In this document: in pieces, positions 368-51,470 of the stretch
How positions within the stretch are numbered: position 1 is the stretch's first letter
How the letters are laid out: the number at the start of each line of letters is the position of its first letter
Assembly (NCBI GenBank): GCA_950097015.1
Contig: CATNEN010000001.1
Span: 12,772,001 to 12,836,000 of the forward strand
DNA from: Macrostomum hystrix
Lineage: Eukaryota; Animalia; Platyhelminthes
DNA length: 64,000 nucleotides
Direction of reading: 5' to 3'
Translations under genes and position numbers: made by a program
Notes under the pieces: model-generated
Seen by the model: the letters and a program-made list of their open reading frames with translations, nothing else
Database searches by the model: none
What the model was told of the DNA's origin: nothing

Positions 368-723
368 CCGACCCCACTCGAACCTGAGCGTGACCCTCTA
401 TGACCCGCAGCTTCTTCTTTCCATGGCGAAAATAGCAACCGAACTCCAGATGCAGCAGTTGCCCTTGAACCAGCACAGTCCAGTCAATGTCTGAGTCAGC
501 CGCTGTCCTGCCGTTCACTTGCACCAGACTGTTGGCCCAGCCCTCTGCGTAGCTGCCTGTCATCCGCATCTGCGAGTTCTGAGTAAGGACTCGAGCGACT
601 TCTTGCAGCCAGTCAGCCATTCTCTGCTGACACATTGCTCTCTCCTGAGTGAATCCCGCATCGCTGAGCAGTCGGTGCAGTTCCTCACTGAGCTGCCTGT
701 CCCGCTGTGAGTCGTCTCTGAGC
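368..723 (-). CDS. Gene A coding exon 2: N-terminal half of the Mab-21/cGAS-like nucleotidyltransferase (exon 3 lies beyond the left edge)
   Basis: Acceptor ttccag (AG at 725-724) and donor GTGAGT (367-362). The 356 nt are in frame with exon 1 (..SK|LRDDSQRDRQLSEELHRLL..). Motif TGSYAEG...SDIDW is present. Confidence 0.88.
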
Positions 724-991
724 CTGGAATGATGGGGAATTCAGTCAGCTGATGGTTTGTACAGACTGCACAGACTGGCGTATCAAGCTGATCAGCTGAG
801 GGGAGTTTCCAATCAGAATCAGAAACTCACTCAGCGAGAGCCGAGTCGGTGCGGAGTCCAGCTGCCTTTTTCTTTTTTCTGCTGCTGGAAAAGGGCGCAG
901 GTTTAGATTAGTTTTACCCGAAACGGTCTGCACGAGTACAGCAAGGGCAAAAAGCGGCTTAAAATATTTTAGAATATAAAAACGGACTTAC

Positions 992-2442
992 TTCGAAGTT
1001 CTGTTCTCCAGCAGCCGCAGCACCTGCTGATGTCCCATCTGCTCCGCCACCTGCGCGCACGTCTGGCCCCGACTGTCCCGATGACTCGCATCCGCTCCTC
1101 TGTCCATCAGACTCTTGGCTGCTCGCACGTGACCAGCCTCACAAGCTCGCGACAGAGCTGTCCGACCCTGACTGTCTTCAGCTCGCACTGACGCATCGAG
1201 ACACACCAGCCTCTCAATGAGCTCGTGATGACCTGCATCAGCTGCCAGCATGAGAGCAGTGGCTCCTGAGCTGTCGGGCACATCGACATGTTTTCTGCTG
1301 AATCGCTTGTCACGGAGGAGTGTGAGAGCCAGTGCGACATGGCCATGGGAGATGGAGACACAGAGCAGCTGTGTGATCTGAGCTGGCTGCATTCGAGACA
1401 GAGTCCGGCTGAGAACAGAGTTCCTGCCCTCAATGGCCATCGAGGCGGTGAAGCTGAGGACTTGGATGGACTGGAAGAGCCACTCGGGCTGAAGACCAAG
1501 TTCCTTGACGACATTTTCACGCAGATGAGAGCAAGCCGCGACTGCACAGACATAACGAAAATCTTGGTCAGCATCTGTCCCCAAGAAAAATTTGACCACT
1601 TCCAACTGACCATTAATTGCAGCAGGTTTCGCAGCCTCCTTGCAGCACTGATCTCTCAGTGTTTGGTCAGCAATTGTCGGCACCAAAAATTTGACCACTT
1701 CCCACTGACCATTGCTTACAGCAGATTCCGCAGCCTCCTTGCAGCACTGATCTCTCAGTGTTTGGTCAGCAATTGTCGGCACCAAAAATTTGACCACTTC
1801 CAACTGACCATTGTATGCAGCAGATTCCGCAGCCTCCTTGCAGCACTGATCTCTCAGTGGTTGGTCAGCAATTGTCAGCACCAAAAATTTGACCACTTCC
1901 CACTGACCATTGATTGCAGCAGGTCTCGCAGCTTCCTTGCAGCACTGATCTCTCAGTGTTTGGTCAGCAATTGTCGGCACCAAAAATTTGACCACTTCCC
2001 ACTGACCATTGCTTGCAGCAGGTCTCGCAGCCTCCTTGCAGCACTGATCTCTCAGTGTTTGGTCAGCAATTGTCGGCACCAAAAATTTGACCACTTCCAA
2101 CTGACGCTCACTAGCAGCAGATTTCGCAGCCTCCTTGCAGCACTGATCTCTCAGTGTTTGGTCAGCAATTGTCGCCACCAAAAATTTGACCACTTCCCAC
2201 TGACCTAATCTTGCAGCGGATTCCACAGCCTCCTTGCAGCACTGATCTCTCAGTGGTTGGTCAGCAACTGTCTGCACCAGAAGCTTCACAATTTCCCAGT
2301 GACGGTGATTCGCAGCAAGACGCCAATGCACTTCACACAGTCCATCTCTTCTGGAGCTGGATTTGATTGACTTCAGGTGATTTCGAACTTCGGTTTCCAG
2401 CCCCTGTGCTACAGCTCGCTCAAAGCTGATTTTCTGTCCCAT
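992..2442 (-). CDS. Gene A coding exon 1: MGQKIS start, 7 variable 33-aa ankyrin-like repeats and canonical ankyrin repeats of an ANK-Mab21/cGLR fusion
   Basis: ORF 988..2442 has AAxxGQxEVVKFLV repeats and canonical ANK motifs (GATALMLAADAGH, GRTALSRACEAGH). The ORF 'stop' lies inside a GTAAGT donor (991-986), phase 2. Confidence 0.9.
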
Positions 2443-7817: not shown

Positions 7818-9223
7818 TCATAGTCGCTCCAGCTTGTCCCTGACCCAGCGGATCTTCTCCTCATCCTGCGTCTCCATGGCGACGCGTCTCTCGTCCCTGA
7901 CGGTCTCCATCTGTCGCAGGCTGAACTCCACGTGCTCAACTTGGTCGCTGTAGTGAGCCAGAGTGAGCAGCTCCTCCAAGTCCGGGTCCTCTTGCAGCTC
8001 TGAGCGCCACGCATCGAAGTCGATTGCTGTGCGATTGCGGAGCAGCTCAGCTTGGAGACTCCAGCTCAGGCAGCGGAAGTTCACGTACAGGTGCTCAGAG
8101 CGAGGCTGTGACAGTCTGGCTGTGAGCAGAGTCTGCGTGAACTCGGGAAGGAATGTGAATCGAGGCGGAGTGTCTGCGGGGAGGCAGAACCTCCACGCCC
8201 AGTCTGAGTCTGATGGCAAAGTGATGTCTAAAGGTATGAGCCGATAATCTCCGATATCGTCAGGCCTCATTCCATTCCGAACTCTGTGACTCTGGAGCTC
8301 CATCGCGAGTCTCTTAGCCTCCTCGGAGTCTCCGAACTTCAAATGCGCCATGGCGGTCATGCACAGGGCGGCGCACTTGCACCACCGCAGCTGATGCAGG
8401 AGACTGAGCTGCCTCATCAGGGTTTCTCTGTCTGCAGACTGTGACTGCAGCTGAAGAACACAATGGTGCACCACACTGTACACGTCTGCTGGCATCTCAT
8501 AAAAAGCGCCAATTCCTACCCTAATCTGAGTGACAGCAGGCGGCGCTGTCAGTGGCAGCAGAGTGAATGGGTGAAAGTAGAAGTTCTCTGACTGCAGTGG
8601 TCTCAAAAGTCTCCTCATCTGCTCAACCACTCCGCCGATGTCGCTTCTCAGCTCTCTCAGTCGGTCTCGAACTCTCGCCTTCGTGTTGTCGAAGTCGCCG
8701 CCGATTCCAGCATTTTTGAAGTAGAGCGGAGCGTCGGGCATGAAGAAGTGCGGCATGCACTCATCGGGTGAGCTGCTTGAGTCGATGAACCTCAGCATCA
8801 TGTCGAGAGACTCCTTCAGCAGTGAGATCAGATTCTGAGGCTGCCAAGCTTCAGCATTTGGGTCTGTGCCATGCTTCTCCAGCATGAAGAAGAGCAGAGT
8901 CTTTGCATGGTAGGTCTTGAGTCCATGAGTGTCCAGAGTGAGTGGCAAATGTCTCTTGAAGATGAACTTGATGATTGAGAACAGCTGTCCCTGGACTGTG
9001 CTCAGCCGTCTCATGGCGTGTTTCTCTTGGAAGCTGAAGCTCACTCTGAGCTCATTGGTCTCATTAGGTCTGGTCGCCCTCACGAGGTGAACAGAAGTGT
9101 AGCTGTGTCCAATCAGCTGTTTGACTCTGTCCTCACAGAAGCCACTGCAGCACTGGATCGCATGGCACGTGTCCTGAGCAGGCCGCACACCACATGCCTT
9201 GGCTGAGACGGCAGGTTGGCTGC
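7818..9223 (-). CDS. Gene B coding exon 3: Mab-21 C-terminal lobe and helical/TPR-like tail (spliced product 1549 aa, or 1503 aa from MGQK)
   Basis: Acceptor ctgcag (AG at 9225-9224), phase 1. Mab-21 motifs QDTCHAI, LRVSFSFQEK, LKTYHAKTLLFF and MPHFFMP. Confidence 0.9.
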
Positions 9224-9653: not shown

Positions 9654-10021
9654 CCGACCCCACTGGAACCTGAGCTTGACCCTCCATGACCCTCAGCTTC
9701 GTGGTACCTTCGCAGTTTCGGTTTCTCACGTCGCAGCCGCCCTCCAGATGCAACTCTTGCCCTTGAACCAGCACAGTCCAGTCAATGTCTGAGTCAGCCG
9801 CTGTCCTGCCGTTCACTTGCACCAGACTGTTGGCCCAGCCCTCTGCGTAGCTGCCTGTCATCCGCATCTTCCGGTTCTGAGTGAGGACTCGAGCGACTCC
9901 TTGCGGCCAGTAAGCCATTCTCTGCTGACACTCCGCTCTCTCCCGAGTGAATCCCGCCTTGCTGAGCAGTCGGTGCAGTTCCATACTGAGCTGCCTGTCC
10001 CGCTGTGAGTAGTCTCTGAGC
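9654..10021 (-). CDS. Gene B coding exon 2: cGLR NTase GS...DxD exon
   Basis: Acceptor cattccag (AG at 10023-10022) and donor GTGAGT (9653-9648). 368 nt, in frame. TGSYAEG...SDIDW present. Confidence 0.85.
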
Positions 10022-10663: not shown

Positions 10664-13539
10664 TTCGAAGTTCTGTTCTCCAGCAGCCGCAGCACCTGCT
10701 GATGTCCCAGCTGCTCCGCCACCTGCGCGCACGTCTGGCCCCGACTGTCCCGATGACTCGCATCCGCTCCTCTGTCCATCAGAGTCTTGGCTGCTCGCGC
10801 GTGACCCGCCTCACAAGCTCGCGACAGAGCTGTCCGACCCTGACTGTCTTCAGCTCGCACTGACGCACCGAGATCCACCAGCCTCTCGATGAGCTCGTGA
10901 TGACCTGCATCAGCTGCCAGCATGAGAGCAGTGGCTCCTGTGCTGTCGGGCACATCGACATGTTCTCTGCTGAAACGCTTGTCATGGAGGAGTGTGAGAG
11001 CCAGTGCGACATGGCCATGGGAGATGGAGACACCGAGCAGCTGTGTGATCTGAGCTGGCTGCATTCGAGACAGAGTCTGGCTGAGAACATCGTTCCTGCC
11101 CTCAATGGCCATCGAGGCGGTAAAGCTGAGGACTTGGATGGACTGGAAGAGCCACTCGGGCTGAAGTCCAAGTTCCTTGACGACATTTTCACGGAGATAA
11201 GAGCAAGCCACGACTGCACAGACATAACGAAAATCTTGGTCAGCATCTGTCGCCAACAAAAATTTGACCACTTCCAACTGACCATATCTTGCAGCAGATT
11301 CCGCAGCCTCCTTGCAGCACTGATCTCTCAGTGTTTGGTCAGCAATTGTCGGCACCAAAAATTTCACCACTTCCAACTGACCTCTGCTTAAAGCTGATTC
11401 CGCAGCCTCCTTGCAGCACTGATCTCTCAGTGTTTGGTCAGCAATTGTCGGCACCAAAAATTTGACCACTTCCCACTGGCCATTGATTGCAGCAGATTCC
11501 GCAGCCTCCTTGCAGAACTGATCTCTCAGTGTTTGGTCAGCAATTGTCGGCACCAAAAATTTGACCACTTCCAACTGACCATTTCTTGCAGCAGGTCTCG
11601 CAGCCTCCTTGCAGCACTGATCTTTCAGTGTTTGGTCAGCAATTGTCGGCACCAAAAATTTGACCACTTCCCACTGGCCATTGATTGCAGCAGATTCCGC
11701 AGCCTCCTTGCAGCACTTATCTCTCAGTGTTTGGTCAGCAATTGTCGGCACCAAAAATTTGACCACTTCCCACTGGCCATTGATTGCAGCAGGTCTCGCA
11801 GCCTCCTTGCAGCACTGATCTCTCAGTGTTTGGTCAGCAATTGTCGGCACCAAAAATTTCACCACTTCCAACTGACCATTGTATGCAGCAGATTCCGCAG
11901 CCTCCTTGCAGCACTGATCTTTCAGTGTTTGGTCAGCAATTGTCGGCACCAAAAATTTGACCACTTCCAACTGACCATTTCTTGCAGCAGGTCTCGCAGC
12001 CTCCTTGCAGCACTGATCTTTCAGTGTTTGGTCAGCAATTGTCGGCACCAAAAATTTGACCACTTCCAACTGACGCTCACTAGCAGCAGATTTCGCAGCC
12101 TCCTTGCAGCACTGATCTTTCAGTGTTTGGTCAGCAATTGTCGGCACCAAAAATTTGACCACTTCCCACTGACCATTTCTTGCAGCAGGTCTCGCAGCCT
12201 CCTTGCAGCACTGATCTTTCAGTGTTTGGTCAGCAATTGTCGGCACCAAAAATTTGACCACTTCCAACTGACCATTTCTTGCAGCAGGTCTTGCAGCCTC
12301 CTTGCAGCACTGATCTTTCAGTGTTTGGTCAGCAATTGTCGGCACCAACAATTCGACCACTCCCCACTGATGATTGATTGCAGCATATTCCGCAGCCTCC
12401 TTGCAGCACTTATCTCTCAGTGTTTGGTCAGCAATTGTCGGCACCAAAAATTTGACCACTTCAAACTGACCATATCTTGCAGCAGGTCTCGCAGCCTCCT
12501 TGCAGAACTGATCTTTCAGTGTTTGGTCGGCAATTGTCGGCACCAAAAATTTGACCACTTCTAACTGACCCTTCCTTGCAGCAGATTCCGCAGCCTCCTT
12601 GCAGCACTTATCTCTCAGTGTTTGGTCAGCAATTGTCGGCACCAAAAATTTGACCACTTCCCACTGGCCATTGATTGCAGCAGATTTCGCAACCTCCTTG
12701 CAGCACTGATCTCTCAGTGTTTGATCAGCAATTGTCGGCACCAAAAATTTGACCACTTCCCACTGATGATTGATTGCAGCATATTTCACAGCCTCCTTGC
12801 AGCACTGATCTTTCAGTGTTTGGTCAGCAATTGTCGGCACCAAAAATTTGACCACTTCCAACTGACCATTGATTGCAGCATATTTCACAGCCTCCTTGCA
12901 GCACTGATCTTTCAGTGTTTGGTCAGCAATTGTCGGCACCAAAAATTTGACCACTTCCCACTGGCCATTGATTGCAGCAGATTTCGCAACCTCCTTGCAG
13001 CACTGATCTCTCAGTGTTTGATCAGCAATTGTCGGCACCAAAAATTTGACCACTTCCCACTGACCTAATCTTGCAGCAGATTCCGCAGCCTCCTTGCAGC
13101 ACTGACCTCTCAGTGTTTGGTCAGCAATTGTCGGCACCAAAAATTTGACCACTTCCCACTGACCATTGATTGCAGCGGATTCCACAGCCTCCTTGCAGCA
13201 CTGATCTCTCAGTGTTTGGTCCGCAACTGTCTGCACCAGAAGTTTCACAATTTCCCAGTGACGGTGATTCGCAGCAAGACGCCAATGCACTTCACACAGT
13301 CCATCTCTTCTGGAGCTGCTTTTGATTGATCTTAAGTGATTTCGAACTTCGGTTTTCAGCCCCTCTGCTACAGCTCGCTCAAAGCTGATTTTCTGTCCCA
13401 TCTGTCTATTCCTCCATCTGTCGATCCATCCATCTGTCAATGCATTTATCCAATCAAGGATTATCCGGAAATGGTATCTAGTAAGGATGGATTCAAGGAT
13501 AAATTTAAGCAACAAAACAAAAAATCCTGTCAGTTCCAT
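10664..13539 (-). CDS. Gene B coding exon 1: optional 46-aa hydrophobic leader, MGQKIS at 13401, 20 variable ankyrin-like repeats and canonical ANK
   Basis: ORF 10660..13539, with 20 CCKE/FCKE units counted. GTAAGT donor at 10663-10658, phase 2. Confidence 0.88.
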
Positions 13540-17544: not shown

Positions 17545-17574
17545 GTCAAACTAAACAATCACTGCAGAACCAAC

Positions 17575-18109: not shown

Positions 18110-19560
18110 TCACTCATTATTCTGTCGCCTAATATCAATTTGATGCCAAAATCGGATTTGCTGCTGCAGCTTCTCCATCACCCAGTGGATCTTCGCCTCA
18201 TCCTGCGTCTCCATGGCGACGCGTCTCTCGTCCCTGACGGTCTCCATCTGTCGCAGGATGAAGTTCACGTGCTCAACTTGGTCGCTGTAGTAAGCCAGAT
18301 TGAGCAGCTCCTCCAAGTCCGGGTCCTCTTGCAGCTCTGAGAGCCACGCATTGAAGTCGATTGCTGTGCGATTGCGGAGCAGCTCAGCTTGGAGACTCCA
18401 GCTCAGGCAGCGGAAGTTCACGTACAGGTGCTCGGAGCGAGGCTGTGACAGTCTGGCTGTGAGCAGAGTCTGTGTGAACCCGGGAAGGAATGGAAATCGA
18501 GGCGGAGTGTCTGCGGGGAGGCAGAACCTCCACGCCCAGTCCGAGTCTGATGGCAAAGTGCTGTCTGAAGGTATGAGCCGATAATCTCCGATATCACCAG
18601 GCCTCATTCCACTCTGAACTCTGTGACTCTGGAGCTCCATCGCGAGTCTCTTAGCCTCCTCGGAGTCTCCGAACTTCAAATGCGCCATGGCGGTCATGCA
18701 CAGGGCGGCGCACTTGCACCACCGCAGCTGATGCAGGAGACTGAGCTGCCTCATCAGGGTGTCTCTGTCTGCAGACTCTGACTGCAGCTCGCGAACACAA
18801 TGGTGCACCACACTGTACACGTCTGCTGACATCTCATAACTATCACCAAATCCTTCCCTTATCTGAGTGACAGCAGGCGGCGCTGTCAGTGGCAGCAGAG
18901 TGAACAGGTGAAAGTAGAAATTCTCTGACTGCAGAGGTCTCACGAGACTCCTCATCTGCTCAACCACTCCGCCGATGTCGCTTCTCAGCTCTCTCAGTCG
19001 GTCTCGAACCATCGCCTTCGTGTTGTCGAAGTCGCCGCCGATTCCAGCGTTCTTGAAGTAGAGCGGAGCGTCGGGCATGAAGAAGTGCGGCATGCACTCA
19101 TCGGGTGAGCTGCTTGAGTCGATGAAGCTCAGCATCATGTCGAGAGACTCCTTGAGCAGTGAGATCAGATTCTGAGGCTGCCAAGCTTCAGCATTCGGGT
19201 CTGTGCCATGCTTCTCCAGCATGAAGAAGAGCAGAGTCTTTGCATGGTAGGTCTTGAGTCCAGGAGTGTCCAGAGTGAGTGGCAAATGTCGCTTAAAGAT
19301 GAACTTGATGATTGAGAACAGTTGTCCCTGGACTGTGCTCAGCCGTCTCATGGCCTTTTTCTCTTGGAAGCTGAAGCTCACTCTAAGCTCATTGGTCTCA
19401 TTCGGTCTGGTCGCCCTCACGAGGTGAACAGAAGTGTAGCTGTGTCCAATCAGCTTCTCGACTCTGTCCTCACAGAAGCCACTGCAGCACTGGATCGCAT
19501 GGCACGTGTCCTGAGCAGGCCGCACACCGCATGCCTTGGCTGAGACGGCAGGTTGGCTGC
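18110..19560 (-). CDS. Gene C coding exon 3: Mab-21 C-lobe and tail (spliced product 1026 aa)
   Basis: Acceptor AG at 19562-19561. Same Mab-21 motifs. Exon sum 3081 nt = 1027 codons. Confidence 0.9.
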
Positions 19561-19975: not shown

Positions 19976-20352
19976 CCGACCCCACTGCCACCTGAGCGTG
20001 ACCCTCCATGACAAGCAGCTTCGTGGCAGCTCTACAGTCTTTCCAAGGCTTCTTCGTTCCATCACAGCCGCGCTCCAGATGCAGCAGTTGGCCTTGAACC
20101 AGCACAGTCCAGTCAATGTCTGAGTCAGCCGCTGTCCTGCCGTTCACTTGCACCAGACTGTTGGCCCAGCCCTCTGCGTAGCTGCCTGTCATCTGCATCT
20201 GCGAGTTCTGAGTGAGGACTCGAGCGACTCTTTCCAGCCAGTCAGCCATTCTCTTCTGACACTTTGCTCTCTCCCGAGTGAATCCCGCCTCGCTGAGCAG
20301 TCGGCGCAGTTCCTCACTGAGCTGCCTGTCCCGCTGTGAGTCGTCACTGAGC
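19976..20352 (-). CDS. Gene C coding exon 2: cGLR NTase GS...DxD exon
   Basis: Acceptor AG at 20354-20353 and donor GTGAGT at 19975-19970. 377 nt, in frame. Confidence 0.88.
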
Positions 20353-23127: not shown

Positions 23128-24380
23128 CTCTTTGTCTGGTTCTCCAGCAGCCGCAGCACCTGCTGATGTCCCAGCTGCTCCGCCACCTGCGCGCACGTCT
23201 GGCCCCGACTGTCCCGATGACTCGCATCCGCTCCTCTGTCCATCAGAGTCTTGGCTGCTCGCACGTGACCCGCCTCACAAGCTCGCGACAGAGCTGTCCG
23301 ACCCTGACTGTCTTCAGCTCGCACTGACGCACCGAGATCCACCAGCCTCTCAATGAGCTCGTGATGACCTACATCAGCTGCCAGCATGAGAGCAGTGGCT
23401 CCTGTGCTGTCGGGCACATCGACATATTCTCTGCTGAATCGCTCGTCACGGAGGAGTGTGACAGCCAGTGCGACATGGCCATGGGAGATGGAGACACAGA
23501 GCAGCTGTGTGATCTGAGCTGGCTGCATTCGAGACAGAGTCTGGCTGAGAACATCGTTCCTGCCCTCAATGGCCATCGAGGCGGTGAAGCTGAGGACTTG
23601 GATGGACTGGAAGAGCCACTCGGGCTGAAGTCCAAGCTCCTTGACGACATTTTCACGGAGATAAGAGCAAGCCGCGACTGCACAGACATAACGAAAATCT
23701 TGGTCAGCATCTGTCCCCAAGAAAAATTTGACCACTTTCAACTGACCACATCTTGCAGCCCATTCGGCAGCCTCCTTGCAGCACTGATCTCTCAGTGTTT
23801 GGTCAGCAATTTTCGGCACCAAAAATTTGACCACTTCCAACTGACCCTTACTTGCCGCAGATTTCGCAGCCTCCTTGCAGCACTGATCTCTCAGTGTTTG
23901 GTCAGCAATTGTCGGCACCAAAAATTTGACCACTTCCCACTGACCATTGATTGCAGCAGATGCCGCAGCCTCCTTGCAGTACCCATCTCTCAGAGTTTGG
24001 TCAGCAATTGTCGGCACCAAAAATTTGACCACTTCCAACTGACCACTTCTTGCAGCAGGTCTCGCAGCATCCTTGCAGCACTGATCTCTCAGAGTTTGGT
24101 CAGCAATTGCCGGCACCAAAAATTTGACCACTTCCAACTGACCATTGATTGCAGCAGATTCCGCAGCCTCCTTGCAGCACTGATCTCTCAGTGTTTGGTC
24201 CGCAACTGTCTGCACCAGAAGTTTCACAATTTCCCAGTGACGGTGATTCGCAGCAAGACGCCAATGCACATTACACAGTCCATCTCTTCTGGAGCTGCTT
24301 TTGATTGATTTTAAGTGATTTCGAACTTCGGTTTCCAGCCCCTCTGCTACAGCTCGCTCAAAGCTGATTTTCTGTCCCAT
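23128..24380 (-). CDS. Gene C coding exon 1: 5 variable ankyrin-like repeats and canonical ANK
   Basis: ORF 23022..24380. Donor GTGGGT at 23127-23122, phase 2. The ORF tail after ..QTKR is intron read-through. Confidence 0.88.
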
Positions 24381-28910: not shown

Positions 28911-29204
28911 TCAGCTTGATGACAGGCGAGGACCTCGGCAGCTGTCTTCACTAGCTGTCATGCGGCTTCGGACGGTCTCAGTCTCCGTTTCCATAGAAAC
29001 TGCATGCGATCGATTTGATTTCCTTAGTCGCTCCAGCTTCTCCCTGACACAGCGGATCTTCTCCTCATCCAGCGTCTCCATGGCGACGCGTCTCTCGTCC
29101 CTGACGGTCTCCATCTGTCGCAGGTTGATCTCCGCGTGCTCAACTTAGTCGCTGTATTGAGCCAGAGTGAGCAGCTCCTCCAAGTCCGGGTCCTCTTGCA
29201 GCTC
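28911..29204 (-). pseudogene. 3' remnant of a sixth cGLR paralogue (end of exon 3)
   Basis: ELQEDPDLEELLTLAQYSD*VEHAEINLRQMETVRDERRVAMET.. with in-frame TAA at 29145-29147. Homology ends abruptly at 29204. Confidence 0.85.
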
Positions 29205-32747: not shown

Positions 32748-34324
32748 TCAAGGCTCCGGCAGCGACTTCGCAAACCGCTGCAGCTTTGATTGGACCCAGC
32801 CGTCTCTCTGCAGCGCCACCGTTTCCATGGCAACAAGTCGACCGAAGTCAGCTCTGACTGGATGCAGCCGCGCTCTCACCCACAGCATCCGCTCCTCATC
32901 CTCCGAGCTCGAGTGACCGACGCTGCAGCTGCGAGTGGAAATTCGCCACCGCTTCTCCCTGACCCAGCGGATCTTCTCCTCATCCAGCGTCTCCATGGCG
33001 ACGCGTCTCTCGTCACTGACGGTCTTCATCTGTCGCAGGCTGAACTCCACGTGCTCAACTTGGTCGCTGTAGTGAGCCAGAGTGAGCAGCTCCTCCAAGT
33101 CCGGGTCCTCTTGCAGCTCTGAGCGCCACGCATCGAAGTCGATTGCTGTGCGATTGCGGAGCAGCTCAGCTTGGAGACTCCAGCTCAGGCAGCGGAAGTT
33201 CACGTACAGGTGCTCGGAGCGAGGCTGTGACAGTCTGGCTGTGAGCAGAGTCTGCGTGAACTCGGGAAGGAATGTGAATCGAGGCGGAGTGTCTGCTGGG
33301 AGGCAGAACCTCCACGCCCAGTCCGAGTCTGATGGCAGCCGATATTTTCCGATACCACCAGGCCTCATTTCACTCTGAACTCTGTGACTCTGGAGCTCCA
33401 TCGCGAGTCTCTCAGCCTCCTTGGTATCCCCGAATCTTAAATGCGCCATGGCGGTCATGCACAGGGCGGCGCACTTGCACCACCGCAGCTGATGCAGGAA
33501 ACTGAGCTGCCTCATCAGGGTGTCTCTGTCTGCAGACTTTGACTGCAGCTGAAGAACACAATGGTGCACCACACTGTACACGTCTGCCGACATCTTATCA
33601 CCACTATATCGGGGTTCATTCCTAATCTGAGTGACAGCAGGCGGCGCTGTCAGTGGCAGCAGAGTGAACGGGTGAAAGTAGAAGTTCTCTGACTGCAGAG
33701 GTCTCACGAGTCTCCTCATCTGCTCAACCACTCCGCCAATGTCGCTTCTCAGCTCTCTCAGTCGGTCTCGTACCCTCGCCTTCGTGTTGTCAAAGTCGCC
33801 GCCGATTCCAGCGTTCTTGAAGTAGAGCGGAGCGTCGGACATGAAGAAGTGCGGCATGCACTCATCGGGTGAGCTGCTTGAGTCGATGAAGCTCAGCATC
33901 ATGTCGAGAGACTCCTTGAGCAGTGAGATCAGATTCTGAGGCTGCCAAGCTTCAGCATTCGGGTCTGTGCCATGCTTCTCCAGCATGAAGAAGAGCAGAG
34001 TCTTTGCATGGTAGGTCTTGAGTCCAGGTGTGTCCAGAGTGAGTGGCAAGTGTCTCTTGAAGATGAACTTGATGATTGAGAACAGCTGTCCCTGGACTGT
34101 GCTCAGCTGTCTCATGGCCTCTTTCTCTTGGAAGCTGAAGCTCACTCTGAGCTCATTGGTCTCATTCGGTCTGGTCGCCCTCACGAGGTGAACAGAAGTG
34201 TTGCTGTATCGAATCAGCTTTCTGATTCTGTCCTCACAGAAGCCACTGCAGCACTGGATCGCATGGCACGTGTCCTGAGCAGGCCTCACACCACATGCCT
34301 TGGCTGAGACGGCAGGTTGGCTGC
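32748..34324 (-). CDS. Gene D coding exon 3: Mab-21 C-lobe and extended tail (spliced product 1200 aa)
   Basis: Acceptor AG at 34326-34325. Mab-21 motifs present. Exon sum 3603 nt = 1201 codons. Confidence 0.9.
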
Positions 34325-34737: not shown

Positions 34738-35114
34738 CCGACCCCACTGCCACCTGAGCGTGACCCTCCATGACCCGCAGCTTCGTGGCAGCTTCACAGT
34801 CTTTCCAAGGCTTCTTCGTTCCATCGCAACCGCCCTCCAGATGCAGCAGTTGGCCTTGAACCAGCACAGTCCAGTCAATGTCTGAGTCAGCCGCTGTCCT
34901 GCCGTTCACTTGCACCAGACTGTTGGCCCAGCCCTCTGCGTAGCTGCCTGTCATCTGCATCTGCGAGTTCTGAGTGATGATTCGAGCGACTCCTTCCAGC
35001 CAGTCAGCCATTCTCTGCTGACACTCCGCTCTCTCCCGAGTGAATCCCGCCTCGCTGAGCAGTCGGTGCAGTTCCTCACTGAGCTGCCTGTCCCGCTGTG
35101 AGTCGTATCTGAGC
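34738..35114 (-). CDS. Gene D coding exon 2: cGLR NTase GS...DxD exon
   Basis: Acceptor AG at 35116-35115 and donor GTGAGT at 34737-34732. 377 nt, in frame. Confidence 0.88.
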
Positions 35115-37889: not shown

Positions 37890-39538
37890 CTCTTTGTCTG
37901 GTTCTCCAGCAGCCGCAGCACCTGCTGATGTCCCAGCTGCTCCGCCACCTGCGCGCACGTCTGGCCCCGACTGTCCCGATGACTCGCATCCGCTCCTCTG
38001 TCCATCAGAGTCTTGGCTGCTCGCACGTGACCCGCCTCACAAGCTCGCGACAGAGCTGTCCGACCCTGACTGTCTTCAGCTCGCACTGACGCACCGAGAT
38101 CCACCAGCCTCTCAATGAGCTCGTGATGACCTACATCAGCTGCCAGCATGAGAGCAGTGGCTCCTGAGCTGTCGGGCACATCGACATGTTCTCTGCTGAA
38201 TCGCTCGTCATGGAGGAGTGTGAGAGCCAGTGCGACATGGCCATGGGAGATGGAGACACAGAGCAGCTGTGTGATCTGAGCTGGCTGCATTCGAGACAGA
38301 GTCTGGGCGAGAACAGAGTTCCCGCCCTCAATGGACATCGAGTCGGTGAAGCTGAGGACTTGGATGGACTGGAAGAGCCACTCGGGCTGAAGTCCAAGGA
38401 AGGCGACGACATTTTCACGGAGATAAGAGCAAGCCGCGACTGCACAGACATAACGAAAATCTTGGTCAGCATCTGTCCCCAAGAAAAATTTGACCACTTC
38501 CAACTGACCACTTCTTGCAGCCCATTCGGCAGCCTCCTTGCAGCACTGATCTCTCAGTGTTTGGTCAGCAATTTTCGGCACCAAAAATTTGACCACTTCC
38601 AACTGACCCTCACTTGCAGCAGATTTCGCAGCCTCCTTGCAGCACTGATCTCTCAGAGTTTGGTCAGCAATTGTCGGCACCAAAAATTTGACCACTTTCA
38701 ACTGACCATCAAATGCAGCAGATTCCGCAGCCTCCTTGCAGCACTGATCTCTCAGTTTTTCATCAGCAATTGTCGGCACCAAAAATTTGACCACATCTAA
38801 CTGACCCTTCCTTGCAGCCCATTCCGCAGCCTCCTTGCAGCACTGATCTCTCAGTTTTTCATCAGCAATTGTCAGCACCAAAAATCTGACCACTTCCAAC
38901 TGACCACTTCTTGCAGCAGGTCTCGCAGCATCCTTGCAGCACTGATCTCTCAGAGTTTGGTCAGCGATTGTCGGCACCAAAAATTTGACCACTTCCAACT
39001 GACCTAATCTTGCAGCAGATTCCGCAGCCTCCTTGCAGCACTGACCTCTCAGTGTTTGGTCAGCAATTGCCGGCACCAAAAATTTGACCACTTCCAACTG
39101 ACCTAATCTTGCAGCAGATTCCGCAGCCTCCTTGCAGCACTGACCTCTCAGTGTTTGGTCAGCAATTGCCGGCACCAAAAATTTGACCACTTCTAACTGA
39201 ACTAATCTTGCAGCAGATGCCGCAGCCTCCTTGCAGCACTGATCTCTCAGTGGTTGGTGAGCAATTGTCGGCACCAAACATTTGACCACTTCCAACTGAC
39301 CTAATCTTGCAGCGGATTCCACAGCCTCCTTGCAGCACTGATCTCTCAGTGTTTGGTCCGCAACTGTCTGCACCAGAAGTTTCACAATTTCCCAGTGACG
39401 GTGATTCGCAGCAAGACGCCAATGCACTTCACACAGTCCATCTCTTCTGGAGCTGCTTTTGATTGATTTTAAGTGATTTCGAACTGTGGTTTCCAGCCCC
39501 TCTGCTACAGCTCGCTCAAAGCTAGTTTTCTGACCCAT
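37890..39538 (-). CDS. Gene D coding exon 1: 9 variable ankyrin-like repeats and canonical ANK
   Basis: ORF 37886..39538. The stop lies inside a GTGAGT donor (37889-37884), phase 2. Confidence 0.9.
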
Positions 39539-43832: not shown

Positions 43833-45051
43833 CTGTAGGTGATGTATGACCAGTGTTTATTGGTCGCATATAGTTATCATGATCAGGATTTTTCGCTCAA
43901 AACCAAACAACACAGCAGATTCAAATATTGAACAAGATAAAATATTTAATGATTTACAAGTGAGGAGCTCGTAACAGAAGAAATCAGCCATTTACAATGC
44001 TGCAATCGTCAATGACGGACACAAAAAGAACTCAGAGAGCAGAGCTGATGTCCTCACAGTTTCAGAGCATCAGCCAACTTTATCGTCAAGTTTTTAGCCA
44101 AGCCAGTGCTCAGATTGGCATTTACATAAGACAGCATGCGAAATGACTCTGCAACGACTGGGGAGAGCTCGACTTTGAAGCGAAACTCATAGCAAATCGA
44201 GTCAAGGGCGCCGCAGTTGCTGATAGTTTAATTAGCCTTTGACCGAGAGGGCATACCTCACTTTCTTACCAACTTCAGCCGACGTCCGTTAGCTTTATAT
44301 AATTCAGTTAACTTTCACTAGCTTCTTCCGTTAACTTTACGAAACCTTCTGTTAAATTCGCTAACTTAACCGTTAAATTCCGTTAACTTTCGCTAGCTTC
44401 CGTTAACTTTATTTAATTCCGTTAACTTTCGCTATCTTCGTAGCTTCATCAAACTTCTGTTAACTCCAGCTTACTTTCGTATGCTTCCGCTAAATTTCTT
44501 CAAATTCCCTCAGCTTTCTAGCCTTGCAGCAGCTGTTTTGGCTATGGTTGCTGTTCCCTCAGCTGGAAAACAGCGAAAACTGAGGAAATTGCTTCTAAAA
44601 GCTTTCTCAAGATATCATACGCTCGTAAAAGTAAAAAAGCAGGGATGAAAAGCAGAAAAATCTTACTTTAAATTTACGAAATTAAAAGTCGGTCGAATCA
44701 AAGTCCACCAACGTCAGACACCACAACCTGCTGCATTTCACACTGCACCTCACACCACAACCATTATCCAGCGATGAGCTGAAAGAAACGCCCTGCTACC
44801 TTCAGCTTCATGACAGGCGGTGACTTCGGCAGCTGTCTTCACTAGCTGTCATGCGGCTTCCTGCCCTTGTGCTCGACCTGCAGTCGGACAGGACAGTCTC
44901 AATCTCCGTTTCCATAGAAACTGCATGTGATTGATTCGATTTTCTTAGTCGCTCCAGCTTCTCCCTGACCCAGCGGATCTTCTCCTCATCCTGCGTCTCC
45001 ATGGCGACGCGTCTCTCGTCACTGACGGTCTCCATCTGTCGCAGGCTGAAC

Positions 45052-46325
45052 TCAACGTGCTCTTTGGTCGCTGTAGTGAGCCAGAGTGAGCAGCTCCTCC
45101 AAGTCCGGGTCCTCTTGCAGCTCTGAGAGCCACGCATCGAAGTCGATTGCTGTGCGATTGCGGAGCAGCTCAGCTTGGAGACTCCAGCTCAGGCAGCGGA
45201 AGTTCACGTACAGGTGCGAGGAGCGAGGCTGTGACAGTCTGGCTGTGAGCAGAGTCTGCGTGAACTCGGGAAGGAATGGGAATCGAGGCGGAGTGTCTGC
45301 GGGGAGGCAGAACCTCCACGCCCAGTCTGAGACTGACGGCAGCCGATATTGTCCGATATCACCAGGCATCATTCCACTCTGAACTCTGTGACTCTGGAAC
45401 TCCATCGCGAGTCTCTCAGCCTCCTCGGAGTCTCCGAACTTCAAATGCGCCATGGCGGTCATACACAGGGCGGCGCACTTGCACCACCGCAGCTGATGCA
45501 GGAGACTGAGCTGCCTCATCAGGGTGTCTCTGTCTGCAGACTCTGACTGCAGCTCGCGAACACAATGGTGCACCACACTGTACACGTCTGCTGACATCTC
45601 ATAACTATCACCAAATCCTTCCCTTTTCTGAGTGACAGCAGGCGGCGCTATCAGTGGCAGCAGAGTGAACGGGTGAAAGTAGAAATTCTCTGACTGCAGA
45701 GGTCTCACGAGTCTCCTCATCTGCTCAGCCACTCCGCCGATGTCGCTTCTCAGCTCTCTCAGTCGGTCTCGAACCCTCGCCTTCGTGTTGGCAAAGTCGC
45801 CGCCGATTCCAGCGTTCTTGAAGTAGAGCGGAGCGTCGGGCATGAAGAAGTGCGGCATGCACTCATCGGGTGAGCTGCTTGAGTCGATGAAGCTCAGCAT
45901 CATGTCGAGAGACTCCTTCAGCAGTGAGATCAGATTCTGAGGCTGCCAAGCTTCAGCATTTGGGTGTGTGCCATGCTTCTCCAGCATGAAGAAGAGCAGA
46001 GTCTTTGCATGGTAGGTCTTGAGTCCAGGAGTGTCCAGAGTGAGTGGCAAATGTTTCTTGAAGATGAACTTGATGATTGAGAACAGCTGTCCCTGGACTG
46101 TGCTCAGCTGTCTCATGGCCTCTTTCTCTTGGAAGCTGAAGCTCACTCTGAGCTCATTGGTCTCATTCGGTCTGGTCGCCCTCACGAGGTGAACAGAAGT
46201 GTTGCTGTATCGAATCAGCTTTCTGATTCTGTCCTCACAGAAGCCACTGCAGCACTGGATCGCATGGCACGTGTCCTGAGCAGGCCTCACACCACATGCC
46301 TTGGCTGAGACGGCAGGTTGGCTGC
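45052..46325 (-). pseudogene. Gene E exon 3: Mab-21 C-lobe with a late frameshift
   Basis: Net 2-nt loss near 45063 (GAC CAA AGA GCA CGT TGA versus GAC CAA GTT GAG CAC in paralogues). The original frame continues in ORF 44808..45137. Confidence 0.75.
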
Positions 46326-46740
46326 CTGCAGTGAGTGGTGACCAGTAGAGCAGATTTTTGCGAAAATATATCGATAAGAAATTGGCAGTTATGTTTGATA
46401 TCAAGAAATGATAATTATTTCGCTCATGATATATTATAGCTCAAAACTATTATTTAGCTGACAGTTCAACTTTGAAATCGACAGCGACATTCGAAAAGTC
46501 AAAAATAAATACTAAATACTAAAGTGTTTATTGCTTAACGAAGCAGCATGTTCTGGATGTGATCATTCAATTTCCAAGTTAAGGCATCCCATCGCTCAAA
46601 CTGTACGTCACAAGGTAGTAGAAAAATGTGAACCTGAGGGAAATAATTATAAAAATGATAAATTTAACAATGAAATATTAATACACGCTCGTAAAAAGAT
46701 GATAAAAATACTAAAAAAAAGAATATCAGGTGGGACTCAC

Positions 46741-47117
46741 CCGACCCCACTGCCACCTGAGCGTGACCCTCCATGACCCGCAGCTTCGTGGCAGCTCTAC
46801 AGTCTTTCCAAAGCTTCTTCGTTCCATCGCAACCGCCCTCCAGATGCAGCAGTTGGCCTTGAACCAGCACAGTCCAGTCAATGTCCGAGTCAGCCGCTGT
46901 CCTGCCGTTCACTTGCACCAGACTGTTGGCCCAGCCCTCTGCGTAGCTGCCTGTCATCTGCATCTGCGAGTTCTGAGTGAGGACTCGAGCGACTCCTTGC
47001 AGCCAGTCAGCCATTCTCTGCTGACACTTCGCTCTCTCCTGAGTGAATCCCGCCTTGTTGAGCAGTCGGTGCAGTTCCTCACTGAGCTGCCTGTCCCGCT
47101 GTGAGTCGTCACTGAGC
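46741..47117 (-). pseudogene. Gene E exon 2: cGLR NTase exon, intact but orphaned from exon 1
   Basis: 377 nt with intact splice sites (AG at 47119-47118, GT at 46740-46739) and intact TGSYAEG...SDIDW. The upstream donor is lost. Confidence 0.7.
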
Positions 47118-48821
47118 CTGGAATGATAGGGAATTCAGTGAGCTGATCGATTGTACACCTGCACAGACTGGCGTATCAAGCTCGATCATCAGCTGAAGCG
47201 CAAAGCAGAATCGCTAAAAGAATCAGCAACTTACGCAACCAAGCGGGTTAAGCGTCCGGCCGCCTCCTTAGCCCTCGATTCCCTGAAAATTTCAGAAACA
47301 CAGGCAAAAAATTCTCAACCGTGACCAGAATTAAAGCAATGACCCGAAAATGGAGGAAAACGTAAATGAAAGAACTTAGTTAGAATTCTCACTTAGAATT
47401 CTTTTGTTGTCATTTTCAACTCGAAAATAATGTATAACGCTGTGTAACGCTGTAAGGAATAAAGTACTCATACTCGTATTAGTTAAAGTGAAATGGTTGG
47501 GAGTTTTTGAAACCAGTGACCTGCCCTCATGAAGGATGGGAGTGTGGGAACGGGCGATAGAGTCGATGGTCTATTCGCCTAGCTGCTCGCGAGATGTCGC
47601 TGAGAGAAGGGGGAGGATGAGGAGGTTCAAAGGCCGCAAAGAGTGGTCCTATCGGCCTCAGGCTGGCCAGTCCCACTCGTCCCATAGGCCACAGGCATGA
47701 CTGCCGTGCCTACCCCAAGCAATGCTCGAATCCGGCAAAAGGTCTAAGGGGGCTTCGGATTGTCCGGAATCGGACAAGACAGGGCTCAGCAGCCTACTGT
47801 CGTCAGTAGTGCGATACGCAACTGACTCCTAGCTTCGGTAGCGGTGGTCGAATCGGCTTAGGCTCTTGTCACAGAACTGCGGAAAGGCTATCGGCAAAGC
47901 AGAAAGATGATCTAGGGTAGCGCAACCACCCAATGCGCCTACGTTGCCACCGCAGGCATTTGGGAACTTGGGTCCCCGGAGTACACAGCTCCTAGTTTAT
48001 CACGCAGATAAAGACAAGCCGAAAAATGAGCAAACTGCAACTTCCGTTTTAGACTGGGGTGAGAGCCCCAGAATGGATCGAGACACGCCTCAAAAGGGGA
48101 TTCCTGAATTCGCGCTACAGGGGTCTAGAAAGGTGGTACTAAGAACTTGAATGAGAATCCGTAGCCAGAATCCTACTCATAGCACATCAGACACATTTTA
48201 TACATTAGACTGTAGCCTACGCATTCAGTAACTAACAAATCTGAATCCGTGTGAGTTGAGGAGATCAGAGGCTGGAGAGATTATGCAGAACAACTGGCTG
48301 AATGATTACGCAAGCAGAGAGTAAGTTGATCACCCCTCTCGCTCGCCGCAGTTGCGAGAGGAGGGGAAAAGAAGGGGAATTCCATTGACAGGGGAGGTTG
48401 ACACGCACATTTGAGTCTGCCAGAGAGTAAGGAAAACCGGCCAAGGAATCCCGCACCCTTAGAGGAAATGTACACGCTACACTCCGCATTTTACTCGCAA
48501 ATCCCTAGCTCCTTGTTTCTCTCATGCGCGCTTACAGTTGCCTTCCTGCCGCAGCCTTCTAGCTCGGCCTCGCCAGAGCCCACCCCCTAATAAATTAGCC
48601 ACTCATGTCTGAGGGCTGCCGAAGAGAGAAAATAATTAGGAAAACGACAAAGGAGAGATTTAAATTGTACTAAAATAATAGGCCCAATAAATTAGTAAAG
48701 GCTGTAATTTCACGTTTATTAGGCTGATCAATCCCTAGGCCCGTGCCCGTTATTCCGCCGCCTAGCTGAAAGAATGTCCCTTAGGAATAACAATTAAAAG
48801 CCGCTGCGCGGGGTACTTTGA

Positions 48822-51470
48822 CTACTCAGCATCTGTCCCCAAGAAAAATTTGACCACTTCCAACTGACCACTTCTTGCAGCCTCCTTGCAGCACTGATCT
48901 CTCAGTATTTTGTCAGCAATCGTCGGCACCAAAAATTTGACCACTTCTAACTGACCCTTCCGTGCAGCAGATTCCACAGCCTCCTTGCAGCACTGATCTC
49001 TCAGTGTTTGTTCAGCAATTGTCGGCACCAAAAATTTGACCACTTCCCACTGACCTAATCTTGCAGCAGATTCCGCAGCCTCCTTGCAGCACTGATCTCT
49101 CAGTGGTTGGTCAGCAATTGTCGGCACCAAAAATTTGACCACTTCTAACTGACCCTCACTTGCAGCAGATTCCGCAGCCTTCTTGCAGCACTGATCTCTC
49201 AGTATTTTGTCAGCAATCGTCGGCACCAAAAATTTGACCACTTCCAAATGACCCTTTCTTGCAGCGGATTCCGCAGCCTTCTTGCAGCACTGATCTCTCA
49301 GTATTTTGTCAGCAATTGTCGGCACCAAAAATTTGACCACTTCCCACTGACCTAATCTTGCAGCAGATTCCGCAGCCTCCTTGCAGCACTGATCTCTCAG
49401 TGGTTGGTCAGCAATTGTCGGCACCAAAAATTTGACCACTTCTAACTGACCCTCACTTGCAGCAGATTCCGCAGCCTTCTTGCAGCACTGATCTCTCAGT
49501 ATTTTGTCAGCAATCGTCGGCACCAAAAATTTGACCACTTCCAAATGACCCTCGATTGCAGCAGATTTCACAGCCTCCTTGCAGCACTGATCTCTCAGTG
49601 TTTGTTCAGCAATTGTCGGCACCAAAAATTTGACCACTTCCCACTGACCTAATCTTGCAGCAGATTCCGCAGCCTCCTTGCAGCACTGATCTCTCAGTGG
49701 TTGGTCAGCAATTGTCGGCACCAAAAATTTGACCACTTCTAACTGACCCTCACTTGCAGCAGATTCCGCAGCCTTCTTGCAGCACTGATCTCTCAGTATT
49801 TTGTCAGCAATCGTCGGCACCAAAAATTTGACCACTTCCAAATGACCCTCGATTGCAGCAGATTTCACAGCCTCCTTGCAGCACTGATCTCTCAGTGTTT
49901 GTTCAGCAATTGTCGGCACCAAAAATTTGACCACTTCCCACTGACCTAATCTTGCAGCAGATTCCGCAGCCTCCTTGCAGCACTGATCTCTCAGTATTTT
50001 GTCAGCAATTGTCGGCACCAAAAATTTGACCACTTCTAACTGACCCTTCCTTGCAGCAGATTCCGCAGCCTCCTTGCAGCACTGATCTCTCAGTATTTTG
50101 TCAGCAATTGTCGGCACCAAAAATTTGACCACTTCCCACTGACCATTGATTGCAGCAGATGCCGCAGCCTCCTTGCAGCACTGATCTCTCAGTATTTTGT
50201 CAGCAATTGTCGGCACCAAAAATTTGACCACTTCTAACTGACCCTTCCTTGCAGCAGATTCCGCAGCCTCCTTGCAGCACTGATCTCTCAGTGTTTGGTC
50301 AGCAATTGTCGGCACCAAAAATTTGACCACTTCCCACTGACCATTGATTGCAGCAGATGCCGCAGCCTTCTTGCAGCACTGATCTCTCAGTTTTTCATCA
50401 GCAATTGTCGGCACCAAAAATTTGACCACTTCTAACTGACCCTTCCATGCAGCAGATGCCGCAGCCTTCTTGCAGCACTGATCTCTCAGTTTTTCATCAG
50501 CAATTGTCGGCACCAAAAATTTGACCACTTCTAACTGACCCTTCCTTGCAGCAGATTCCGCAGCCTCCTTGCAGCACTGATCTCTCAGTGTTTGGTCAGC
50601 AATAGTCGGCACCAAAAATTTGACCACTTCCCACTGACCATTGATTGCAGCAGATGCCGCAGCCTTCTTGCAGCACTGATCTCTCAGTTTTTCATCAGCA
50701 ATTGTCGGCACCAAAAATTTGACCACTTCTAACTGACCCTTCCTTGCAGCAGATTCCGCAGCCTCCTTGCAGCACTGATCTCTCAGTGTTTGGTCAGCAA
50801 TTGTCGGCACCAAAAATTTGACCACTTCCCACTGACCATTGATTGCAGCAGATGCCGCAGCCTCCTTGCAGCACTGATCTCTCAGTTTTTCATCAGCAAT
50901 TGTCGGCACCAAAAATTTGTCCACTTCCCACTGACTATTCCATGCAGCATATTCCGCAGCCTTCTCGCAGCACTGATCTCTCAGTGTTTGGTCAGCAATT
51001 GTCGGCACCAAAAATTTGACCACTTCCCACTGACTATTCCATGCAGCAGATTCCGCAGCCTTCTTGCAGCACTGATCTCTCAGTTTTTCATCAGCAATTG
51101 TCGGCACCAAAAATTTGACCACTTCTAACTGACCCTTCCTTGCAGCAGATTCCGCAGCCTTCTTGCAGCACTGATCTCTCAGTATTTTGTCAGCAATTGT
51201 CGGCACCAAAAATTTGACCACTTCTAACTGACCCTTCCTTGCAGCAGATTCCGCAGCCTCCTTGCAGCACTGATCTCTCAGTGTTTGGTCCGCAACTGTC
51301 TGCACCAGAAGTTTCACAATTTCCCAGTGACGGTGATTCGCAGCAAGACGCCAATGCACTTCACACAGTCCATCTCTTCTGGAGCTGCTTTTGATTGATT
51401 TTAAGTGATTTCGAACTTCGGTTTCCAGCCCCTCTACTACAGCTCGCTCAAAGCTAATTTTCTGACCCAT
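48822..51470 (-). CDS. Gene E exon 1, truncated: stand-alone 882-aa ORF of 25 variable ankyrin-like repeats (canonical ANK part and splice donor deleted)
   Basis: Uninterrupted ORF ending ..FFLGTDAE* at a deletion junction (~48820-48825) that joins directly to intron-1 sequence. Confidence 0.8.
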   Translation of the reverse strand: MGQKISFERAVVEGLETEVRNHLKSIKSSSRRDGLCEVHWRLAANHRHWEIVKLLVQTVADQTLRDQCCKEAAESAARKGQLEVVKFLVPTIADKILRDQCCKKAAESAARKGQLEVVKFLVPTIADEKLRDQCCKKAAESAAWNSQWEVVKFLVPTIADQTLRDQCCEKAAEYAAWNSQWEVDKFLVPTIADEKLRDQCCKEAAASAAINGQWEVVKFLVPTIADQTLRDQCCKEAAESAARKGQLEVVKFLVPTIADEKLRDQCCKKAAASAAINGQWEVVKFLVPTIADQTLRDQCCKEAAESAARKGQLEVVKFLVPTIADEKLRDQCCKKAAASAAWKGQLEVVKFLVPTIADEKLRDQCCKKAAASAAINGQWEVVKFLVPTIADQTLRDQCCKEAAESAARKGQLEVVKFLVPTIADKILRDQCCKEAAASAAINGQWEVVKFLVPTIADKILRDQCCKEAAESAARKGQLEVVKFLVPTIADKILRDQCCKEAAESAARLGQWEVVKFLVPTIAEQTLRDQCCKEAVKSAAIEGHLEVVKFLVPTIADKILRDQCCKKAAESAASEGQLEVVKFLVPTIADQPLRDQCCKEAAESAARLGQWEVVKFLVPTIAEQTLRDQCCKEAVKSAAIEGHLEVVKFLVPTIADKILRDQCCKKAAESAASEGQLEVVKFLVPTIADQPLRDQCCKEAAESAARLGQWEVVKFLVPTIADKILRDQCCKKAAESAARKGHLEVVKFLVPTIADKILRDQCCKKAAESAASEGQLEVVKFLVPTIADQPLRDQCCKEAAESAARLGQWEVVKFLVPTIAEQTLRDQCCKEAVESAARKGQLEVVKFLVPTIADKILRDQCCKEAARSGQLEVVKFFLGTDAE

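Follow-up and report, generated by a model that had tools for sequence, protein, structure and literature searches.

The 64,000-nucleotide stretch of the genome of the flatworm Macrostomum hystrix analysed here (the window, C1:12772001-12836000) carries large open reading frames (ORFs) for ankyrin (ANK) repeats, which very probably represent the first exons of tandem genes joining an ANK part to a cGAS-like (Mab-21) nucleotidyltransferase (NTase). Taken as a whole, the locus is best explained as an eight-gene tandem array of ANK-fused cGAS-like receptors (cGLRs) in which the repeat stack acts as a ligand-binding sensor, a reading to which we assign a probability of roughly 0.55. As judged from searches of the 220-Mb genome, the array is part of a family of at least 90 loci.

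Five units, designated A to E, are present on the minus strand of the window, each opening with one of the large ORFs of the ORF list (988-2442, 10660-13539, 23022-24380, 37886-39538 and 48822-51470, respectively), which start with MGQK(I/T)SFERAV. Mapping of the parts of gene B onto 136 kb of the contig revealed eight units within C1:12716738-12823470 (107 kb), in the order E, D, C, B, A, Z1, Z2, Z3, the last three being located outside the window, past whose start the array extends. The initial annotation had dealt with units A to E, and these five are indeed found in the window, but the array is larger and only four of the five look functional, unit E being broken. All units follow a common plan, consisting of one large ANK exon with a phase-2 GT donor, a cattccag acceptor leading into an exon with the GS...DID residues, and a phase-1 intron followed by an exon extending from QDTCHAI to Mab-21_C. 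The middle coding block holds TGSYAEGWANSL...SDIDW in each unit, and the last one holds QDTCHAI, LRVSFSFQEK, TYHAKTLLFF and MPHFFMP; the ORFs, the motifs and the phase-1 intron in front of the QDTCHAI exon were thus all recovered where they had been placed before. Genes C and D are intact, as is A, whose last exon lies outside the window, and B contains a duplicated acceptor. Seven of the eight copies are free of stop codons, with open frames of 1000-1500 codons and synonymous divergence (dS) of 0.05-0.13, and A and Z1 form a near-identical 11-kb duplicate. The MGQKIS start is kept in all eight copies (MGQNQS or MGQNLS in the congener M. lignano), and the conservation of its Gly2 and Ser6 suggests that the proteins may be N-myristoylated.

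The splice junctions were read directly from the sequence, the protein lengths were obtained by adding up the exons, and the exons were searched separately. The donors of exon 1 read tcgaa/gtaagt in A and B, aagag/gtgggt in C and aagag/gtgagt in D, all of them in phase 2 and at the same position, with differing last codons. Exon 2 follows the acceptor cattccag/g in A-E, begins in phase 2 with no start codon at the acceptor, measures 356 nt in A, 368 nt in B and 377 nt in C, D and E, and always ends with tcgg/gtgagt in phase 1. The acceptor of exon 3 is ctgcag/gc, the GC of which completes a Gly codon, and the first base of this exon is found at 9223 (B), 19560 (C), 34324 (D) and 46325 (E). The differences in exon 2 length and in repeat number are all in frame, the phases agree at both junctions, and the exon sums are exact codon multiples, amounting to 3390 nt or 1129 aa for A (including the exon 3 outside the window), 4650 nt or 1549 aa for B, 3081 nt or 1026 aa for C, and 3603 nt or 1200 aa for D; the lengths previously given for B, C and D agree with this arithmetic.

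Exon 1 of gene A (992..2442) codes for the MGQKIS start, an N-cap, seven repeat units of 33 aa and a 214-aa C-terminal module with canonical ANK repeats; its exon 2 (368..723), for which acceptor and donor were both read, contains a spine-helix region, GSYAEG and SDIDW, and exon 3 was placed at C1:12770355-12771937 by mapping of the gene B parts. Gene B consists of exon 1 (10664..13401) with 20 repeat units and the C-terminal ANK module, exon 2 (9654..10021), which was defined from the sequence, ORF fragments and junctions, and exon 3 (7818..9223), which comprises QDTCHAI with the third catalytic Asp, the Mab-21_C core (matched by PF20266) and a family-specific tail of ~270 aa. In gene C, exon 1 (23128..24380) contains five repeat units and the C-terminal ANK module, with a frame that stays open beyond the donor, exon 2 (19976..20352) is reached over an intron 1 of 2.77 kb, and exon 3 (18110..19560) was assigned by mapping and junction reading. 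Gene D is composed of exon 1 (37890..39538) with nine repeat units and the C-terminal ANK module, exon 2 (34738..35114), identified by junction reading, and exon 3 (32748..34324), which is of a long-tail form with 524 codons past the junction.

Two of the units deviate from this pattern. The conserved start of gene B is the MGQK ATG at 13401 instead of 13539, up to which the ORF remains open, and yields a protein of 1503 aa. Between 10023 and 10345 of this gene, the acceptor of intron 1 and the opening 22 codons of exon 2 are duplicated over 57 nt, with the copies flanking an insert of ~270 nt, which results in two candidate acceptors at 10345 and 10022. Splicing to the proximal acceptor, which is followed by the second 22-codon copy (10277-10345), would bring the frame to a stop behind these 22 codons; an internal gtgagg donor (~10278), if also used, would preserve the frame. 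Unit E starts with an ANK ORF (48822..51470) of 24-25 repeat units arranged in three-unit higher-order blocks and ending with ...FFLGTDAE-stop, and lacks any counterpart of positions 36817-38465 of unit D (1.65 kb), which comprise the donor and the whole 214-aa C-terminal ANK module. Part of the intron of this unit upstream is also deleted, and because of the loss of the ANK module, the donor and this intron part it is regarded as broken. Its exon-2-like and exon-3-like sequences (44943..47117; exon-2-like at 46741-47117, exon-3-like to 46325) retain intact catalytic motifs, and the exon 3 frame is broken by a frameshift near 45052.

The connection between the ANK and NTase parts extends far beyond the window. 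Searched against the whole genome, exon 3 gave at least 94 matches and the 214-aa ANK module gave about 50 close matches. Of the 88 exon-3 paralogues listed, 65 are preceded on the same strand by an ANK module, which lies no more than 8 kb upstream and typically at ~1.1 kb. Among the closer paralogues, with identities down to ~40%, this holds for 52 of 57, the five exceptions including Z2 with its 19-kb intron and the broken unit E. In view of the 99-nt arrays detected by Tandem Repeats Finder (TRF) and of the three-part layout, which recurs throughout the genome, a chance arrangement can be excluded. In M. lignano, the annotated proteins P0003, P0004, P0005, P0011 and others contain the complete order of ANK, linker, GSYAEG, SDIDW, VGAG/SQPAV and QDTCHAI in one unbroken chain, and many of the annotated proteins carry both Ank and Mab-21_C according to precomputed Pfam assignments. 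The proposal that the ANK ORFs are not separate genes is therefore well borne out by the donors, acceptors and phases conserved in A-D, by the linkage in 65 of 88 loci and by the contiguity of the M. lignano proteins, as far as sequence comparison can tell.

Some members of the family show further peculiarities. A diverged paralogue at C2:3317333-3320878 (minus strand) has an exon 3 frame continuing into ~650 aa of a 12-aa repeat (ASSVNHPSKLR-like), and an apparent intronless fused copy at C2:3319480, with an open frame of 1192 aa, was rejected as an exon 3 running into this kind of C-terminal low-complexity repeat. In M. lignano, the ANK and Mab-21-like module is joined to a C-terminal protein kinase in P0017 and to a caspase domain in P0123, P0125 and P0266. 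These joins may be genuine fusions, or neighbours that were merged into one gene model; in both cases, genes of death and kinase signalling adjoin family members in this species.

The repeat stacks themselves consist of 99-nt units, of which TRF counts 7.2 copies in A, 20.5 in B, 5.3 in C, 9.3 in D and 24.6 in E, at 86-91% matches. Pfam reads these arrays as ANK repeats (Ank_2, E 1.3e-119 for B and 6e-52 for A), and the ANK part in the AlphaFold model of full-length P0011 (pLDDT 89.6, pTM 0.85) aligns to the Notch ANK domain and to designed ankyrin-repeat proteins (DARPins) with Z ~20. The 76 repeat units correspond to 63 distinct protein sequences, the variation of which is concentrated at unit positions 9, 10, 13, 14, 17, 30 and 31, with entropies of 1.0-2.2 bits compared to values of at most 0.86 at the other 26 of the 33 positions. 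About 70% of the pairwise replacement differences fall within the seven variable codons, and positions 13 and 14 accommodate 7-8 chemically diverse residues each. Together, the variable residues form 45 distinct seven-residue signatures, seven of which are common to more than one gene. These shared signatures, the three-unit blocks of unit E and the A/Z1 duplicate indicate that unequal crossing-over and segmental duplication are ongoing. In the P0011 model, each unit is predicted to consist of an 18-residue helix A and a 9-residue helix B. The variable positions fall on helix A, in its C-terminal half (i, i+1, i+4, i+5) and at its start, where a canonical ANK repeat would show the finger loop, and on the residue that opens helix B. 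The same regions are hypervariable in the ANK repeats of fungal NOD-like receptors (NLRs; Dyrka et al., 2014; PMC4986451). Entropies calculated from the pooled M. lignano proteins are too noisy to confirm the seven positions, with position 13 again being the most variable one.

Whether this variation reflects recognition of ligands is the point at which the most serious competing explanation arises, namely that the fusion is real, and the ANK stack is a scaffold, a localisation device or an autoinhibitory module devoid of ligand specificity, its variation being a neutral by-product of unequal crossing-over. The substitution patterns give this explanation some weight: the ratio of replacement to silent differences (pN/pS), obtained by pairwise comparison of units in a tree- and recombination-unaware manner, reaches only 1.19 at the variable codons, where pS is raised as well, as against 0.75 elsewhere in the repeat, and the corresponding divergence ratio (dN/dS) amounts to ~1.0 for exon 2, ~0.9 for the C-terminal ANK module and ~0.5 for exon 3. 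Diversifying selection on the repeats is not demonstrated by these values, and relaxed constraint in young duplicates fits them, as does rapid evolution under mixed selection. The view of a hypervariable repeat domain, as originally expressed, thus holds for the copy numbers of 5-25 and for the variation at seven of 33 positions. Further points in favour of a scaffold are signs of very recent mechanical duplication, namely the blocks of unit E and the fact that A and Z1 have identical arrays, and the pTM of the P0011 model, which hints at a fixed arrangement of the ANK and NTase parts. However, variation is nearly absent from 26 of the 33 positions, where even synonymous sites hardly differ (pS 0.05), the diverse residues at positions 13 and 14 occur at balanced frequencies, and neutral drift would not be expected to pick just those inner-helix and finger positions which vary in the fungal repeats. 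A stack without specificity is therefore considered rather doubtful, despite being the strongest of the alternatives.

The assignment of the downstream exons to the Mab-21/cGAS family, which had been made from their motifs, was corroborated by profile, structural and signature comparisons. Exon 3 of gene B matches PF20266 (Mab-21_C) with 31.6 bits (E 1.9e-7, cut-off 24.1), and a search with exon 3 through 1.8 billion representative proteins yielded 150 clusters at E<=1e-3, of which the close ones that were looked up by name are all from M. lignano and the distant ones are canonical proteins containing Mab-21 and Mab-21_C. Because the fold searches and the PDB sequence search with full-length P0011 were filled by ANK chains, the cGAS fold match was taken from P0147, an ANK-less natural family member which matches exon 3 of the window at E 4.9e-34, and not from a joined protein of the window itself. 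The model of P0147 (pLDDT 90.9) aligns to mouse cGAS (4k98_A) with Z 19.2 and a root-mean-square deviation of 3.3 A over 255 residues (VIA-align), to oyster Cv-cGLR1 (8gjw) with Z 18.9 and to MB21D2 (7lt1) with Z 17.9; these matches span model residues 1-323, and the top 50 Foldseek matches are all cGAS or cGLR proteins. GSYAEG, SDIDW and QDTCHAI are present in all copies of the window, and residues G400, S401, D422, D424 and D483 (P0011 numbering) are conserved in 62-69 members of a 70-sequence alignment that includes canonical Mab-21 proteins. A 35-residue catalytic stretch, MTGSYAEGWANSLVQVNGRTAADSDIDWTVLVQGQ, does not vary among the seven distinct copies of the array. As judged from the models, the enzyme part adopts the fold of the cGLR family; its GS / DxD / D signature is intact, and the array enzymes look catalytically competent. 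The net charge of the NTase core is near neutral and thus uninformative on nucleic-acid binding. Beyond the cGAS fold follows the ~270-aa tail (residues ~195-456 of the frame 7818-9188 in gene B exon 3), which is conserved across the family with the motifs FYFHPF, DWAWRFC and YVNF; it matched no family in a Pfam search, and in ESM Atlas nothing beyond sub-threshold leads (0.84) to Mab-21_C proteins of molluscs emerged.

A fold of this type need not imply activity, and the NTase-like domain might serve as a non-enzymatic signalling or adaptor module, as proposed for MAB21L1 or shrimp Mab21, in which case neither a second messenger nor a STING step would exist. In line with this idea, no activity has been reported for the M. 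lignano relatives cloned by Li et al. (2023), the kinase and caspase joins in that species suggest signalling by proximity, and a 2026 paper describes Mab21 proteins activating IKK-epsilon outside nucleic-acid sensing (PMC12928593). The retention of GS, DxD and the third Asp in all array copies argues against it, and the invariance of the 35-residue stretch amid surroundings evolving at dN/dS ~1 would be hard to explain without catalysis or nucleotide binding; in addition, the constructs of Li et al. were devoid of the ANK part and screened with nucleic-acid ligands. We therefore consider a purely non-enzymatic role unlikely. Even less credit can be given to the view that the ANK ORFs and NTase exons are separate genes or belong to a decaying pseudogene array with unused in-frame junctions, because the broken unit E, the disrupted start of exon 2 in gene B and the dN/dS values close to 1 for two of the three gene parts are outweighed by an exon 2 beginning in phase 2 without a start codon, by matching phases and in-frame indels at both junctions, and by the upstream ANK modules across deep paralogues and the contiguous M. 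lignano proteins.

The preferred reading of the locus as a sensor-type ANK-cGLR array can be formulated as a mechanism. The array grows and changes as segments are duplicated and as the 99-nt units undergo unequal crossing-over, and the repeat stack would form a ligand-binding solenoid whose specificity is set by the seven variable positions in the inner helix and finger region. The ligand would probably be a protein or another non-nucleic-acid molecule, the binding of which may release or assemble the NTase domain; this domain would then make a nucleotide second messenger to be read by the putative, very diverged STING-domain proteins of the genome. N-myristoylation at the Gly2/Ser6 start may tether the receptors to a membrane. 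In a still more far-reaching version, the array would represent a germline-diversified receptor repertoire, in which unequal crossing-over shuffles a restricted set of 33-aa cassettes, distinguished by some seven surface positions, into many binding specificities, each wired to a cGLR enzyme signalling via cyclic nucleotides toward the diverged STING proteins. We put this version forward as a tentative possibility; if true, it would give the fungal NLR repeat system an equivalent in animals and would include the first cGLRs sensing proteins or other non-nucleic-acid ligands via an appended variable domain.

Besides the substitution ratios, several further points weigh against the proposed sensor array. 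Splicing of the genes rests on sequence logic and on the annotation of the congener, unit E is broken, and the acceptor of gene B is ambiguous. The variable positions were mapped by means of secondary structure and DARPin/ANK numbering instead of coordinates. The Mab-21 NTase profile PF03281 matched neither exon 2 nor full-length P0011 at E<=0.001, so that of the profiles suggested for a check only Mab-21_C and Ank were recovered; this miss looks like a limit of sensitivity, since distant relatives of exon 3 carry PF03281 and the fold match covers the N-lobe. On the side of the STING link, the genome search with PF15009 returned a single stretch at C2:9104529-9104996 with 25.6 bits, which is below the cut-off of 27, and the best PDB matches of this stretch are nearly all STING chains, albeit weak ones with E 0.045 or worse. 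Finally, five M. lignano cGLRs were cloned by Li et al. (2023; PMC9980059), and since Macrostomum is unmentioned in the main text of the preprint, none of them is among the enzymes named as active there.

The surroundings of the genes contain several other features. A 16-nt minisatellite, AGCTGTGGATGGGATC, was detected by TRF at 2757-3743, 24477-24852, 39852-40598 and 51785-52159; it is present in 23-62 copies ~300 nt upstream of the start codon in A, C, D and E, belongs to the duplicated unit and varies in copy number among the units. A tttcag acceptor-like site is found ~50 nt before the ATG and could be a trans-splice site. A 180-nt remnant of the exon 3 3' end, with ~95% identity, is found in the spacers, for example at 29025-29204; it recurs between other units and is a trace of the formation of the duplication unit. 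In unit Z2, which precedes the window, the ANK exon and exon 2 are separated by ~19 kb (C1:12731345-12750758). Past unit E, the region 51500-64000 is composed nearly entirely of short-period satellites (periods of 11-33 nt) with extreme GC skew, such as CTCTCTCCACC x 220 at 55850-58258, and the gene array stops at this satellite region. The intergenic ORFs of the window matched no family in a Pfam search.

Most animal cGLRs are regarded as orphans, and those whose activating ligands are known sense nucleic acids. The flatworm phylum has been reported to have largely lost cGLR-STING signalling, and Macrostomum is a tractable laboratory animal amenable to RNAi and transgenesis. A lineage in which most of ~90 cGLR-like genes carry DARPin-like variable stacks would thus provide a place to ask whether cGLRs respond to proteins or other ligands by way of an added sensor domain, and adds a case from this phylum. 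Descriptively, what is new is the 107-kb tandem array, in which the genes differ chiefly in repeat number and in a seven-position code and retain intact catalytic sites.

A view on the related systems shows that the locus contains further members of an already catalogued family. Li et al. (2023; PMC9980059) list ANK-cGLRs as a minor architecture in their Fig 1C, and their Tables S2/S3 include PAA68676.1 of M. lignano (identical with P0011, BOX15_Mlig016402g1) with Ank_2 hits, as well as PAA93208.1; both of these are among the cloned proteins, in constructs starting at the equivalent of exon 2 without the ANK part. The ANK-cGLRs of M. lignano share with those described here the order of MGQ start, 33-aa repeats, 214-aa ANK module, GSYAEG, SDIDW, VGxG/SQPA, QDTCHAI, Mab-21_C and tail, with identities of 64-72% for the C-terminal ANK module and 78-83% for exon 3, and differ in belonging to another species and in a linker between ANK and NTase that is ~25 aa longer. 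The main text of Li et al. (PMC9980059) contains no discussion of tandem arrays, repeat-number variation or hypervariable positions in M. lignano. Full-text literature searches yielded no paper dealing with cGLRs of Macrostomum or with cGLR-linked hypervariable ANK arrays, and no description of repeat hypervariability or tandem-array organisation in ANK-cGLRs. The remark of the initial annotation that such architectures may exist in automated annotations was too cautious, as they have been described, whereas the hypervariable repeat sensor appears to be undescribed so far. The ANK- and death-domain-fused cGLRs of the coral Stylophora pistillata likewise combine an NTase core with ankyrin repeats, proposed as protein- or ligand-interaction modules, but only three of 42 cGLRs carry extra domains there (PMC9980059), compared to most of at least 88 loci here, with near-identical repeats of variable number.

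With cGAS, Cv-cGLR1 (8gjw) and MB21D2 (7lt1), the enzymes share the bilobal NTase fold (Z 17.9-19.2 for P0147) and the GS / DxD / D signature, at only ~15-22% identity and with a near-neutral instead of a strongly basic core; the extra C-terminal domain of ~270 aa and the N-terminal ANK solenoid set them further apart. DARPins provide the top sequence and fold matches of the ANK part and resemble it in the 33-aa ANK-type unit and the fixed framework, but the canonical beta-hairpin part appears to be replaced here by an N-terminal extension of helix A to 18 residues, as seen in the model. The two most variable positions, 13 and 14, coincide with library positions of DARPins, and the turn positions 2, 3 and 5, which are randomised in DARPins as well, are conserved in these repeats. 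The closest parallel in design is found in the fungal NLRs (PMC4986451), which show near-identical repeats, number variation, variability on the inner helix and the hairpin or loop, modular domains and an effector wired to a repeat sensor. This parallel, which had been drawn from the outset, holds for the near-identical repeats, their 5-25 copies and the variation at a few surface-type positions, but not for the central domain, since no exon and no part of P0011 matched NACHT or NB-ARC in Pfam. Positive selection is not demonstrated here, and the number variation was measured between paralogues. Lacking a NOD/STAND ATPase, and with a cGLR NTase as effector placed C-terminal to the repeats in an animal, the array should be regarded as analogous to the fungal NLRs in design rather than as a member of that family.

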